Numbered from the stretch's first letter, positions 16,432 to 31,502 are shown. The stretch: DNA of 64,000 nt from Amoeboaphelidium protococcarum X5 (GCA_023515725.1 JALDTO010000200.1:1-64000), one strand, 5' to 3'. The notes: generated by a model from the letters alone, not told the origin. Program-made: numbers and translations.

Positions 16432-16504
16432 TGCGTTATCGTCTAGTGGTTTAGGACCCGCGACTTTAACTCGCTTAACCTCGGTTCGAATCCGAGTAAC
16501 GCCT
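16432..16504 (+). tRNA. tRNA-Gln with anticodon UUA (decodes UAA)
   Basis: TGCGTTA-TC-GTCT AGTGGTTTA GGAC-C-CGCGA CT TTA AC TCGCT-TAAC-CTCGG TTCGAAT CCGAG-TAACGCC-T; anticodon at 16466-16468; T5 Pol III terminator follows. Confidence 0.93.
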
Positions 16505-16778
16505 ATTTTTGCTGCATCTATTTTATCTGTTGGTGCTACTATACTGCCTCAATAGATACTTTTTAAATGCCATTGAGTGAAAGTTTTATGGATGATACCG
16601 CGTATTGCTGTTTTAGTGGACGAAAGTTCTAGCGTGCTTGTGGATACTTAAACTGCAATGATGAATCACTTGCATAACGATTGTTAGTGTCACAATTCAA
16701 CCATTATGACAAGTATCACTTCTTTTCATTATCCAGAGCCCGCCGCTTAAATTTAACGCATAGTCTATTTTAATCAAA

Positions 16779-17318
16779 ATGGCCAAAGTCATTGGAAATG
16801 AGGCTGTTTAAAAGCTATTGAAAGGCAAAGTCATCCCTGATGTGATTAATCAAAAGTCGGATCTGTCTCCTCTTGGCGTCTTTTATAAACACACTAAAGT
16901 TGATTTTGGTATTGAACTCTCCATTCATGACACGCAATAAGATCCGTCTATTGATTTGCACGCACTAGGAGCGTCCACTGAACGGTACACGCTGATTATG
17001 GTTGATCCGGATGCTCCAGCACATGAGCATCCTACTTTTGCCCAATTCCGACATTGGTTAGTGATCAACATCACGGCTGGTCAAGTTGAAACAGGTCAAG
17101 AGATTACACCTTATATGGGCCCGGCTCCTCCAGCTAAAACTGGTTTACATCGCTACGTGTTTGTTTTGTATCAGTAGGATGATGAACTGATGGCAGACGA
17201 GGTGGAGGCCACCATTCGTGATCGTCCCAAATTTAATGCTGAACACTTTGCCAGCACTCATTCTCTAAACATGGTTGCTGCAAACTACTTTGTTGCTCAA
17301 AACTAGTCTGAAGAATGA
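16779..17318 (+). CDS. Phosphatidylethanolamine-binding protein (PEBP/RKIP/Tfs1 family)
   Basis: YTLIMVDPDAP, FRHWLVINI, YMGPAPPAKTGLHRYVFVLYQQ, AANYFVAQ. Confidence 0.93.
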
Positions 17319-17455
17319 TATGCCATCCTATATCTTTATTCATATGATTAACTATATGTAACAAATATTGTCGCTGAACTGTAAAATAAAGTACTTGTAA
17401 TAAAGTAGCAATTTCTACTCAAATCTGATATATATTCAACTTTGAAAGCACATAC

Positions 17456-19609
17456 TCAAGTTAGTGGCTACTTTTAGAGATCAACACCTCTTTCAGAAGT
17501 ATTCTATGATCCATTATCTTCTAGAGGTAGCGCTGGCCTATCCAAAGGTTCTCCCTTAACCACTAGCTCAATCTCTTCCTTGCTAAGAGTCTCGTAAGTA
17601 CGCAGCGCTTTGGCAAGTCTATCCAATTCTATGCGCTTTTCAATCAGCAGAGCTCTAGCGCGTTCATAAGACTCTTCAAGTATCCTTTTAACGTCTTTAT
17701 CCACAGCAGCCTTCATTTCCGAACTCAGGAATGTATTCTCATCTCCGCGATGCTATGACAAATCAACTAGACCGATAGATTCTCTAGATCCCATACCCAG
17801 TCGTATTACCATGGATCTCGCAACCTAAGTTGCATTCTATATATCACTCGATGCGCCACTAGTCACTTCTTCATCGCCATAGATCAGTTCTTCACTGCAG
17901 CGACCACCCATTGCGACATCAAGACGAGCTTTCAACTGCTTCCGTGTCCAGTTCATATCATCGCTCTCCGGTAACATGCTAACCATACCTAGGGCTTGAC
18001 CACGAGGCATAATAGTTGCTTTATGAATAGGTATCGCGCCCTCAGTGTACAGAGCAACTATAGCGTGACCAGCCTCATGGTAGGACACCAACTCTTTATT
18101 CTTCTCACTAATAATCTAATTCTTCCGCTCAGCGCCCATTATGATACGATCCCGCGCCCAATCCAAATCATTTTAAGTGACATGAGTCTAAGCAGTACTC
18201 GCAGCTCTTAGTGCAGCGTAATTCACCAAGTTGGCCAACTCAGCACCACTAAATCCGGCAGTTCCTCTGGCAATAATATTCAACTTGACATTACTGGACA
18301 AGGGAACCTTCTTTGTATGAACTTTCAAAATAGCCAACCTACCAGCAACATCTGGAGCAGGCACAGTAATCATACGATCAAATCTACCAGCTCTGATCAA
18401 AGCTTTATCCAAACTCTCTGGAAAGTTAGTCGCTCCAATGACAATAATACCAGTGTTCTAATTAAAGCCATCCATCTCTACCAATAGTTGATTCAGAGTC
18501 ATTTTTGCAAACTATTAATCCTTAGGATTTCTAGTACCACCAACAGCATCTATCTCATCAATAAAGATGATACAAGGACCACCCTTCTTCTTGGCAGCAG
18601 TGAATAGATCACGAACTCTTTTAGCTCCAACACCGACAAATACTTCATCAAATTCAGAGCCGGATGTATGTAGAAATGGAACTTTCGCCTCGCCTGCTAT
18701 AGCTCTAGCCAGTAAAGTCTTACCAACACCGGGTACACCTGTCAATAGAATACCTTTGGGTAACTTGCCACCAAGGCGCGTAAACTTTTACGGATCTTTC
18801 AAAAATTCCACAACTTCAAGCAACTCATCTTTAGCCTCATCCACACCTTGAATGTCGGCAAAGGTGATAATATTCTCCTTGTTCTTCTCACTGGCTGGAT
18901 CAAACTCATTCACAACAGAGAAGCTCTTGGCGGCACTAGTGACTTTTGAAATTTCATCAGTGTACGTGGTGAATATAGCCAGAGCAATGTACAGCACGGC
19001 GGCAATCTTGGCAGCCTGCCACAGTTTGTCTCTGTTAGATGGCGGTGCAGGACGGGCGATAACATGCAGAGGAGCATCTTTAGAGCCGACTGATGCTGCT
19101 GAATCCGAAAACTACTCATATCCAGCTCTACTCTACTGATAGTGCTGACGAGTATTTATACTTCCAAAATCTTGACTACTACTACTATTATTATTAAATG
19201 ATCGCCTGGCTTAATGATACAATGTCGATCCAGCATTCTATTGCGCACTAGCACCGAATGATTTCATGACAAGTTCTAGAGCGATGTCACCGCGGCCAAG
19301 TCTATTCAGAGCTTCAACGTAATACTTTGCTCCCTAGATATCAAGCGCAAACTATCTACTCTCAATCCTACTCACTATATCTTTAAGGCATTGCTCAGCT
19401 TCAAGCCTTGACTGATTGCTAATACTCTACTACAGCAATTCACGGTACAATTAATTCTAGTACTCTGCCACACTGGGATTCTACGCAGCCTTACTTTCAA
19501 GACTATTGCTCCAACTACCAAACCTGCGCCCTTGAACTCTAAAGCGTTGTTACGACAGAGTGGGCGTTCTCACAATTCTTTCACAATATTTTACCAGAAG
19601 CAGCTGCAT
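17456..19609 (-). CDS. YME1: Mitochondrial i-AAA protease Yme1 (FtsH family)
   Basis: [24 protein letters not shown], Walker [25 protein letters not shown] metalloprotease motif, GASSD. Confidence 0.93.
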
Positions 19610-20315
19610 ATCAAAAGAATGATTATATAGTAAAGTTGAATAAAGATTTAAAAGATTTAATTAATCAGAGAACGGGAAAAGAGCAGCAAAATGACGCTTT
19701 ACTAACTTTCAGTCAGTGATATCAGCGCAACAAACGAGGGAACCGACGCGTTCACTTGGCCAAATGTTCTTCATCACTACTTAAATGATGTCATTGGATG
19801 TATAGTTGATGCTGGAAAAATAAGTTAATGAATGATAAAAAATTTAATTCTTATGTCAGTAGAAAACTTTATATTGAAATATTTGATTTATGGTTGGTAT
19901 TACAAACCATACAATGAGACCGGCGATATCCTGCATTGTTTAATGAAGCAGCTTGCGGAACTCAAATCTTATCAGATCAAAGATTAAGTGTAATGTGTCG
20001 ATGATAAACCAAGGAAAACTAAATACAATTATCAAATTGATAAGCTTTTATGAGGCGCTTACACTGACTGACACGATGAATTCATTTGAAACTGGTCCAT
20101 CTGAAAAGGGAAATCTTATTGGTCAGGAGTTTGTCAATGAATCACGCAGATTTCCGAATCTGGATCGATGACTACACGGCCAAGTAAAAGTGAATAAGGG
20201 GCGCAGTGTTGAATAAAACCTCCTCATATTCTCTCTTGGACTATCTTTCTCTCTTTTGTCTTATCGTAAGCTTTTTATTAGTAAATATATAAATTTTGTA
20301 AAACGAATAATAAAT

Positions 20316-29858: not shown

Positions 29859-30668
29859 TCACAGACTCTCTTAAATAAAATCAACAGCTTCTTTAAGCGC
29901 GTCTTGTTATGCCTTTATGGCCTTCTAATTATGAGGATTAGCGCGAATTGCCCAGCCATGTTCTACTCCGTCGTATGTTGTAACACGACTATTATTCGGG
30001 CGCGTATCCAACATATCTTTGACCGATTGCATGTCGGATGAGCTCCACTAGAAATCCTTTGATGGAAACTATACTAGCAGCGGACTTTTTACCTATTCTA
30101 GATCCTGAGGATGATTCCATTTAGCTGGATGAGTGGACACAATACACTTTATAGTCTCAGACACCGGACCAACACTGGTGACGGCGTGAAGACCACCAAA
30201 ACAGAATCCCACCACAGCAATCTTTGTATAGCTCTTCTACTGCATAGCGCGAAGAAAGCTTTACACCACCGGAGTGACTTTTGCGGGTGAATGAGTAGAC
30301 ATCCAATAAACCAACTTTGGCAGCGAGAATGAGAGTCTGACTGCACGAATACATTGATTGAAGAATCCAGTTTACTCGTCCATCATACCTAACACGCTCA
30401 GCGGCATCGGGTCATTCAATACAATATCAGGCACGTATGCTGGAATGCTCAACTTATCAGCAAGAGTGTCGGCCACCAGCCTAACATTCACAAACTTTTG
30501 ACCAAACACATCTGTCAGAACTAACAGTGCCGTATCTCCAGCTTCAGAACCGCTGATGTAACAATCCATTTCATCAAGCTACGTATCAACGCCCTTTGGT
30601 TCGCCTTAGTGTATATACCCGCTGACACAACATTCATTCACTGAATTTTATTACCCGCTCTCTTCCAT
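29859..30668 (-). CDS. Dienelactone hydrolase family protein (Aim2-like)
   Basis: ECCVSGYIHQGEPKG, LTDVFG, nucleophile motif GFCFGG, catalytic His in YDGVEHGWAIR. Confidence 0.9.
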
Positions 30669-30739
30669 TTAAATTACGGTGTGAAAGCAAAAAGAGACGC
30701 TTATTTTAGGTGATAAAAATTGTGATGGAAATCAAAAAG

Positions 30740-30813
30740 AGGTGCTACTCGGATTTGAACCGAGATTGAGAGAGTCAGAGTCTCTATTCCTAACCGAATT
30801 AGAACATAGCACC
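30740..30813 (-). tRNA. tRNA-Gln(CUG), canonical
   Basis: GGTGCTA-TG-TTCT AATTCGGTTA GGAA-T-AGAGA CT CTG AC TCTCT-CAAT-CTCGG TTCAAAT CCGAG-TAGCACC-T; fully paired acceptor and anticodon stems; T5 terminator. Confidence 0.95.
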
Positions 30814-31430
30814 TTTTGAGGTATTTGGATGAAAGATTGAAGGTTGACAAATTATATTTCCACAGGGTAACAATAAAAGATCTCGTAAGAGTCCTTTGAT
30901 TCTTTGATTGACATCTAGTCAACTGGTTGAAGACGCGATTGAGCGCTTTGATCTTAGCATCATTTTCAATTCATGAATACGTACCTTATTACTTTTGCTA
31001 GAAATTATCTCATTAATTTTAAACAATTGTCATTTACAACGTGTACAGTATATCGCAATGGAAATAAATCAAGCAGAGTTGTGCTGGACTGAACAGAATG
31101 TGGTCTTCGCGTTTTGTAACTCGTTCTGAGCCTTCGATGGAATAAAAGAATGGACTATATATAGAGAGATGGCTATTGTATATGTATAATGATTCTTAAA
31201 GCGGCACTAAGCAATCATTGTATGTACACCTACGCCTTATGATAATCATTATCAATGTTAGCAAGAACTGCTGTAACGACGAGACATCTTGTATTTTATA
31301 ATCGATTGAAACAGTACCGCATTAGGATGGGGACCAAAATAGACTTATGTTCAACCGCTCAATGCCTAATAAATGCTTTTAATTTAAGTAGAATCAATGG
31401 CTGAAATTCTCATATATTTACTGGATAAAA

Positions 31431-31502
31431 TGCGTTATCGTCTAGTGGTAAGGACACGCGACTCTAACTCGCATAACCTCGGTTCGAATCCGAGTAACGC
31501 CT
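31431..31502 (+). tRNA. tRNA-Gln with anticodon CUA (decodes UAG)
   Basis: TGCGTTA-TC-GTCT AGTGGTAA GGAC-A-CGCGA CT CTA AC TCGCA-TAAC-CTCGG TTCGAAT CCGAG-TAACGCC-T; anticodon at 31464-31466; T-run terminator. Confidence 0.93.

Follow-up and report, generated by a model that had tools for sequence, protein, structure and literature searches.

Open 27:43 pair at the top of the anticodon stem in both UAR-reading tRNA-Gln genes of Amoeboaphelidium protococcarum X5

In a 64,000-nucleotide (nt) stretch of DNA from Amoeboaphelidium protococcarum X5 (GCA_023515725.1, JALDTO010000200.1:1-64000; this whole stretch is referred to as the window), the two tRNA-Gln genes with anticodons for UAA and UAG (together UAR, where R is A or G), tRNA(UUA) and tRNA(CUA), both have an anticodon stem of four base pairs (bp) in which the top pair, 27:43, is open, whereas the tRNA-Gln(CUG) gene between them has all five pairs. 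The feature is present in every copy of the two stop-reading tRNAs (hereafter suppressors) that was found, and it is real and stable rather than an assembly error or a recent mutation. It is tentatively read here as functional tuning that would make UAR decoding modestly more efficient and broader, with neutral variation ranking close behind.

Anatomy of the four-pair anticodon stems

ARAGORN places three tRNA genes in the window, at 16431-16505 (+) for UUA, 30739-30813 (-) for CUG and 31430-31503 (+) for CUA, and each was also scored by Infernal with Rfam RF00005 at a cut-off of 29 bits (Table 1). The anticodon stem of tRNA(UUA), cgcga/tcgct, sets C27 (16459) against U43 (16475), and that of tRNA(CUA), cgcga/tcgca, sets C27 (31457) against A43 (31473). 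ARAGORN, Infernal and folding agree that neither is a standard pair, as was originally predicted, and the stem of tRNA-Gln(CUG), agaga/tctct, likewise forms the five Watson-Crick pairs ascribed to it. Infernal flags 27:43 as non-standard in both suppressors and flags no pair at all in the CUG gene. In free-energy folding, 27:43 pairing is absent from all folds up to 2 kcal/mol above the optimum for both suppressors, and the minimum-energy fold of tRNA(CUA) is a cloverleaf whose anticodon stem has four pairs. Both suppressors therefore fit the definition of a 4-bp-stem tRNA (Kachale 2023, Fakih 2026), in which the terminal pair is open, the loop has 7 nt and the length is normal.

The two mismatches differ in their surroundings. 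In tRNA(UUA) the next opposed bases, C26 and U44, are likewise unable to pair, whereas A26 and U44 of tRNA(CUA) are able to pair beyond the mismatch. C.A can form a protonated wobble, and given these two options the four pairs of tRNA(CUA) are to be taken as a strict count of Watson-Crick and G.U pairs. The other canonical glutamine tRNA, tRNA-Gln(UUG), located on contigs C207 and C264, closes its top pair only by a U27.G43 wobble.

A shorter stem is not a weaker one here. The calculated energies of the isolated anticodon arms are -3.8 kcal/mol for tRNA(UUA) and -3.9 kcal/mol for tRNA(CUA), compared with -2.7 kcal/mol for Gln-CUG and -2.3 kcal/mol for Gln-UUG; with three G:C pairs among their four, the suppressor arms exceed the canonical glutamine arms in stability. 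Any effect of the open pair would, on this folding model, fall on the geometry of the 26-27/43-44 junction. Both suppressor genes have a B box for RNA polymerase III (Pol III) and T-run terminators. Judged by its anticodon, tRNA(UUA) is the cognate decoder of UAA and should also read UAG through U.G wobble, and tRNA(CUA) is by the same token the cognate decoder of UAG.

Table 1. Coordinates of the suppressor genes, their parts and copies, and the other features discussed; positions are those of the window unless a contig is named.
Feature	Location	Strand	Support or content
tRNA-Gln(UUA), 73 nt	16432..16504	+	ARAGORN; Infernal RF00005 48.6 bits
Anticodon arm of tRNA(UUA)	16459..16475	+	4 pairs gcga/tcgc; loop cuUUAac
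T-run (5 T) just past tRNA(UUA)	16506..16510	+	Pol III terminator-like; read from sequence
tRNA-Gln(CUA), 72 nt	31431..31502	+	ARAGORN; Infernal RF00005 52.1 bits
Anticodon arm of tRNA(CUA)	31457..31473	+	4 pairs gcga/tcgc; loop cuCUAac
T-run past tRNA(CUA)	31503..31506	+	with discriminator U73 makes 5 T; Pol III terminator-like
tRNA-Gln(CUG), comparison gene	30740..30813	-	ARAGORN; Infernal 57.0 bits; G1:C72; 5-bp stem agaga/tctct
Second copy of tRNA(UUA)	C158 383536-383608		BLAST; identical
Second copy of tRNA(CUA)	C158 362956-363027		BLAST; identical
Second copy of tRNA-Gln(CUG)	C158 369025-369098		BLAST; identical
Solo long terminal repeat, 165 nt	16250-16414		ends 17 nt upstream of tRNA(UUA)
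eRF1, two homeologues	C244:165620-165988 (L069) and C136:289113-289481 (L070)

Copies, descent and the frequency of open 27:43 pairs

The assembly comprises 23.6 Mb in 346 contigs, of which the window is contig C200. BLAST finds exactly one further copy of each of the three window tRNAs, and these identical second copies lie on contig C158 in the same gene order (Table 1). A covariance model of the four Gln-family tRNAs was used to score 150 of 4291 first-look candidates; eight Gln-family genes score 89-94 bits and the next match, a different tRNA, scores 58 bits, with no further UUA or CUA suppressor gene among the 150 candidates scored. The original prediction turned on whether other UUA and CUA copies share the mismatch, and it is present in four of four gene copies. 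At the tRNA loci of C200 and C158 the flanks are 53-92% identical and the tRNAs 100% identical, which marks the pair of loci as haplotypes or duplicates of long standing. Every gene examined occurs as two copies on contig pairs (C200/C158, C207/C264, C244/C136 and C154/C162), again with flanks 53-92% identical, which indicates that two diverged haplotypes or homeologous subgenomes are present in the assembly.

tRNA(UUA) and tRNA(CUA) share 93% of their sequence, all differences being confined to the D-loop and to positions 26, 34 and 43. As 93% identical paralogues sharing C27, they point to a C27 that was inherited once; the unpaired C27 would thus be common by descent to two sister genes, and parsimony favours a single mismatch in the ancestor and a single subsequent change at position 43. 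The original prediction described the pair as broken by different bases in the two genes and considered that the lineage may independently use a 4-bp stem, wording that overstates the case. The bases at position 43 do differ, but the close paralogy and the shared C27 do not bear out two independent events.

Public contigs were compared over window positions 16250-16700. The tRNA(UUA) locus is present in a 2013 biofilm metagenome, in another sample of organism A and in organism B, with flanks that differ at 15-28 sites plus gaps, and position 43 of the UUA gene is T in all three of these other contig sets. The CUA paralogue in the metagenome and in the other organism A sample has A43 and C34. 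No C27 variant occurs among the listed differences of the other-sample contigs, a list that leaves six differences undisplayed, and G43 has not been gained by either paralogue in any sampled haplotype.

The suppressors likely descend from tRNA-Gln by an old event. Their T-stem, ctcgg/ccgag, is the same as in Gln-CUG, and their acceptor stem departs from that of Gln-UUG by a change of G1 to U and a compensatory change of C5:G68 to U5:A68. A37-C38 and U73 occur in all four Gln-family species, and elsewhere in the census described below U73 occurs only in Cys. The T-stem, A37-C38 and U73 named in the original prediction as common to both suppressors and tRNA-Gln(CUG) are thus correct, and together with the acceptor stem they support the origin from tRNA-Gln. 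Whole-gene identity does less for it, as the suppressors are 71.6% identical to Gln-CUG and 71.2% to Gln-UUG, barely above the 69.9% shared with Thr-CGU, and even between Gln-UUG and Gln-CUG the identity is only 70%. The entire anticodon stem of the suppressors has been remodelled relative to both canonical glutamine tRNAs.

The background frequency of open 27:43 pairs was taken from a census of 34 ordinary nuclear anticodon species that could be parsed, with Tyr, Val, Leu-CAA and several others lying outside it. The census draws on a whole-genome RF00005 search in which 63 of 1171 candidates were scored, without the window's own CUG gene, and was extended through copies of a tRNA-targeting long terminal repeat (LTR) and a model for long-arm tRNAs. 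The top pair is open in three of the 34 ordinary species (9%; loci L001/L002, L021/L022/L054 and L030/L037): Lys-UUU has G27.A43, Lys-CUU has A27.C43 in two of its three stem variants, and Arg-UCU has C27.A43 with A26:U44, an arrangement as in tRNA(CUA). Both Met-CAU species are open at 31:39 (U31.U39), an internal mismatch at 28:42 occurs in Cys-GCA and Ser-AGA, and tRNA-Trp(CCA) and the remaining species have a normal 5-bp stem. Ordinary tRNAs are thus open at 27:43 less often than the suppressors, as expected from the original prediction, though their frequency is not zero. Fisher's exact test gives p = 0.016 when the suppressors are counted as two events and p = 0.11 when they are counted as one inherited event, which is the more defensible choice. 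In bacteria, 4-bp stems occur in 5.6% of all tRNAs and in 20.5% of tRNA-Sup(UUA), which is among the highest values (Fakih et al. 2026, PMC13092985). The census also contains a single intron-containing tRNA gene, tRNA-Ile(UAU) (L075), with an 18-nt intron after position 37.

Two further observations concern the surroundings and the acceptor ends of these genes. The solo LTR upstream of tRNA(UUA) has at least 43 copies in the genome, many of which adjoin tRNA genes, and the copies are often paired 5.05-5.2 kb apart, which marks the element as a retrotransposon of about 5.2 kb. Insertion of a full copy on C158 accounts for the spacing between the CUA and CUG genes, which is 6 kb on that contig and 0.7 kb in the window. 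At the acceptor end, Infernal also flags U1.C72 in both suppressors (window 16432/16503 and 31431/31501), a mismatch on which the original prediction was silent. U1.C72 was considered as a suppressor-specific identity feature and rejected, as the mismatch is genome-wide: position 1 is unpaired with C72 or A72 in 30 of 48 distinct nuclear tRNA gene sequences (loci L001-L116). Gene copies that otherwise match each other vary at position 1 (T, C, A or G), and pairing at positions 2-7 is normal. Thg1-family genes of two kinds are present in the genome, and a 2014 review linked end-editing to no nuclear-encoded tRNA apart from tRNA-His G-1. The 1:72 pattern looks like the mark that 5'-end repair of cytosolic tRNAs would leave in the genes, and makes such repair a candidate.

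Glutamine codons and the release factor eRF1

The UAR=Gln code of A. protococcarum has already been published. In the window, TGA-delimited frames contain many in-frame TAA and TAG codons, and their stop-free pieces match the Pfam families AAA and Peptidase_M41, Pyridoxal_deC, EIF3I, Pyr_redox_2 and protein kinase, the Pfam-confirmed genes being interrupted by TAA and TAG only. Across 13 long window frames, the glutamine-type codons number 180 TAA, 241 TAG, 155 CAA and 180 CAG, so that TAR makes up 56% of them, and in-frame TAR codons of the eRF1 gene align with glutamines of human eRF1. Judged by these frames, TAR is glutamine and TGA is the sole stop. The suppressors would then be major tRNAs and not occasional read-through agents, since TAR supplies 56% of glutamine codons and TGA serves as the stop.

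The gene for eRF1 is present as two homeologues (Table 1), and stronger matches to PF03463 on C264 and C207 look like Pelota, judged by the conserved translation start. The original prediction had looked to eRF1 for substitutions, and they are present. TASNIKS has become AAVNIKS (T58A and S60V in human numbering), and the YxCxxxF motif is YQCDNRF where the reference has YLCDNKF; GTS and Ser70 are retained, and Glu55 is followed by Q. At the Q of YQCDNRF, one eRF1 homeologue uses CAR and the other uses TAR. With the motif names and the tie of Ser70 to UGA recognition taken from PMC12153298, the altered TASNIKS and the kept Ser70 fit an eRF1 that still reads UGA, and it may do so without UAR. 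In the same 13 frames, G follows TAR in 15% of cases and CAR in 25% (chi-square p = 0.001), A at the +4 position of TAR is not depleted, and TAR codons lie nearer the 5' part of the TGA-to-TGA frames. Leaders and introns that are unannotated within the frames may explain both the +4 bias and the position bias of TAR relative to CAR.

Explanations of the open pair and their meaning

The reading placed first, with a probability of roughly 0.4, is that the open 27:43 pair tunes the suppressors for UAR decoding. The ancestral suppressor, derived from tRNA-Gln, would already have had a C27 without a facing G, and after the split into UUA and CUA genes positions 43 and 26 would have drifted in the sister copies. 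The G:C-rich remainder of the stem would keep the arm folded, with a local loosening where the anticodon stem meets the D-arm (26-27/43-44). As suggested by other systems, a loosened top pair may allow easier acceptance in the ribosomal A site on all-A/U codons and a relaxed wobble, and tRNA(CUA) could then also read UAA through C.A, backing up tRNA(UUA). The open pair probably dates to the ambiguous phase of the code change and would have been kept since.

Published work supplies the precedent for this reading. With a 4-bp stem, tRNA-Trp(CCA) reads UGA as a near-cognate more often, in several eukaryotes as well as in Escherichia coli (10.1101/2023.10.09.561518; PMC12153298; PMC13092985). In these reassigned-stop lineages, described in 2023 and later papers, the top pair is open with the 7-nt loop and the length kept, as here. 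However, tRNA-Trp(CCA) reads UGA as a near-cognate, whereas the suppressors described here are fully cognate (UUA and CUA reading UAR), and in those lineages experiments have measured the effect and the stems of standard-code relatives are 5 bp long, whereas the feature here is known from gene sequence. Unlike those lineages, this genome has a tRNA-Trp(CCA) whose 5-bp stem is normal, and UGA stays a stop. The E. coli su7 mutants of Schultz and Yarus (1994), as described in 10.1101/2023.10.09.561518, share their anticodons and the affected stem position with the present genes; by that account, a broken 27:43 pair in the su7 tRNA(CUA) promotes UAA reading and a CUG-anticodon derivative with a broken top pair reads UAG. 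These were laboratory mutants on a bacterial tRNA-Trp backbone, whereas the genes here are natural eukaryotic tRNA-Gln genes.

Bacterial tRNA-Sup(UUA) are natural cognate readers of UAA that often have a 4-bp stem, as here, and a relaxed wobble named 'extended superwobble', by which C34 may read A-ending codons, has been proposed (Fakih et al. 2026, PMC13092985). That bacterial count includes stems open at either end and comes mostly from standard-code genomes, unlike the genome-wide reassignment here. Tetrahymena tRNA-Gln(UUA) and tRNA-Gln(CUA) are, like the present genes, cognate UAR suppressors of a UAR=Gln eukaryote, and they derive from tRNA-Gln, as the present genes probably do too; as relayed by PMC11687900 from Hanyu et al. 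(1986), the UUA species reads both UAA and UAG and the ciliate origin is independent. In the literature searched, which did not include Kachale 2023, Hanyu 1986 or the aphelid genome paper, eukaryotic 4-bp stems are reported only for near-cognate tRNA-Trp(CCA), and no report was found on 27:43 in cognate UAR suppressors of any eukaryote.

Relatives of the suppressors were also sought among environmental sequences. A metagenome scan in which positions 27 and 43 were left free returned only one tRNA(CUA), which is unrelated. The tRNA(CUA) on metagenome contig JACCEA012030945.1 (46 kb; L066 6115-6187, -) has the T-arm sequence of the suppressors and a fully paired stem, acgga/tccgt. A synteny search with the 138-aa piece adjoining tRNA(UUA) returned only contigs of less than 1.1 kb.

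Several points weigh against functional tuning. Three lysine and arginine species that have nothing to do with stop codons are open at the same pair, which sets the background at 9%, and with the suppressors counted as effectively one event their enrichment over this background is not significant. Drift at position 43 is equally compatible with a plain lack of constraint, and the persistence of the two sites in other samples carries little weight, as total divergence among the contigs is small and conservation of a whole gene across haplotypes says little about two single sites within it. The pair below the mismatch has the opposite orientation to that expected of an efficient reader: the Valasek laboratory has linked pyrimidine28:purine42 to efficient readthrough by tRNA-Gln, and the suppressors have purine28:pyrimidine42. 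The preprint of that laboratory on tRNA-Gln in UAR=Gln ciliates treats 28:42 in the CUG and UUG species only.

Nearly as probable is the alternative that the ancestral suppressor happened to have the mismatch and that the variation is neutral and tolerated, the arm staying folded on its G:C-rich remaining pairs, with no meaningful effect on decoding. Neutrality is consistent with the open 27:43 pairs of ordinary species, which rise to 15% when the two Met tRNAs open at 31:39 are counted, with the 4-bp stems in 5.6% of bacterial tRNAs (PMC13092985), and with an enrichment that reduces to one inherited event. Outside the anticodon and the D-loop the paralogues differ only at positions 26 and 43, as would be expected of unconstrained sites, and the suppressor arm is more stable than the canonical glutamine arms. 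However, in all published experiments surveyed, opening the top pair alters decoding, neither paralogue has acquired the G43 that would restore the pair in any sampled haplotype, and bacterial tRNA-Sup(UUA) are also enriched for 4-bp stems.

The remaining explanations are less likely, the first two of them turning on the origin of the suppressors. An extension of functional tuning sees the mismatch as a trace of the UAR-to-glutamine change itself, in which a duplicated tRNA-Gln lost its top pair, misread UAA and UAG and then gained a cognate anticodon, with the short stem still selected for UAR decoding and for reading of UAA by tRNA(CUA). This extended history is considered unlikely. Somewhat less likely again is the same course without a present function, in which a duplicate tRNA-Gln acquired the mismatch while its anticodon was still UUG or CUG and read UAR by a first-position G.U, the anticodon becoming cognate later and the open pair remaining as a relic. 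Among the su7 results of Schultz and Yarus, as given in 10.1101/2023.10.09.561518, a CUG-anticodon tRNA read UAG most strongly when its top pair was disrupted. The mismatch is also older than the UUA/CUA split, and the distance of the suppressors from Gln-UUG and Gln-CUG (71-72% identity) matches that between these two (70%), pointing to an old lineage. However, with the anticodon stem remodelled relative to both canonical glutamine tRNAs, such a history is not readable from one genome.

The main proposal of the original prediction, that the open pair is a present-day adaptation by which the suppressors beat eRF1 at UAA and UAG, is improbable and is the least likely version of the functional reading, because TAR is the majority of glutamine codons, eRF1 is altered, and lysine and arginine tRNAs have the same feature. 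It would explain why the mismatch is in both suppressors and not in the canonical glutamine tRNAs, and a published 4-bp stem and eRF1 changes jointly boost stop-codon decoding (PMC12153298). The rarity of G after TAR would also fit competition with termination, but this bias is not a clean termination signature, as A is not depleted and the frames include leaders and introns. With TAR in the majority and TGA delimiting the Pfam-confirmed gene frames, termination at UAR must already be negligible. The AAVNIKS and YQCDNRF motifs of an eRF1 that keeps its UGA-linked Ser70 also count against the proposal, and the lysine and arginine tRNAs with the same mismatch face no release factor.

A slightly more doubtful explanation is a lineage-wide rule in which an open 27:43 pair tunes tRNAs whose codon-anticodon duplex is all A/U, the suppressors merely following it. 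The five open species have the anticodons UUU, CUU, UCU, UUA and CUA, and an open pair is associated with the absence of G and C at anticodon positions 35-36 (p = 0.023 with the suppressors included). The link fails among ordinary tRNAs taken alone (p = 0.16) and was rejected; it is contradicted by Leu-UAA, which like Phe-GAA, Ile-AAU, Ile-UAU and Asn-GUU has all five pairs, and the idea was formed after the data had been seen, on a census without Tyr, Val, Leu-CAA and several others. Least probable of all is post-transcriptional repair, in which the gene sequence would mislead, as editing of C to U at position 27 would leave tRNA(CUA) with a U27:A43 pair: three of the five mismatches in the genome are C.A or A.C, the type that such editing repairs, and the widespread 1:72 mismatches are a separate sign of tRNA end repair, but an edited C27 in tRNA(UUA) would face U43 as a still unpaired U.U, and the G.A of Lys-UUU is beyond C-to-U repair.

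This genome offers one clean example, which amounts to a single evolutionary event, of a question that concerns code change in general, namely how a suppressor tRNA comes to establish itself in the face of eRF1. If functional tuning is correct, the short-stem principle would extend from near-cognate tRNA-Trp to cognate suppressors. To our knowledge, UAR-to-glutamine has had the most origins of all nuclear code changes, and a history in which the top pair was lost before the anticodon became cognate would, if true, provide a stepwise route for it. Should cognate UAR suppressors tend to open their top pair, the E. coli suppressor genetics of 1994 would be linked to natural code change and, if the tendency is general, it could inform the design of therapeutic suppressor tRNAs.

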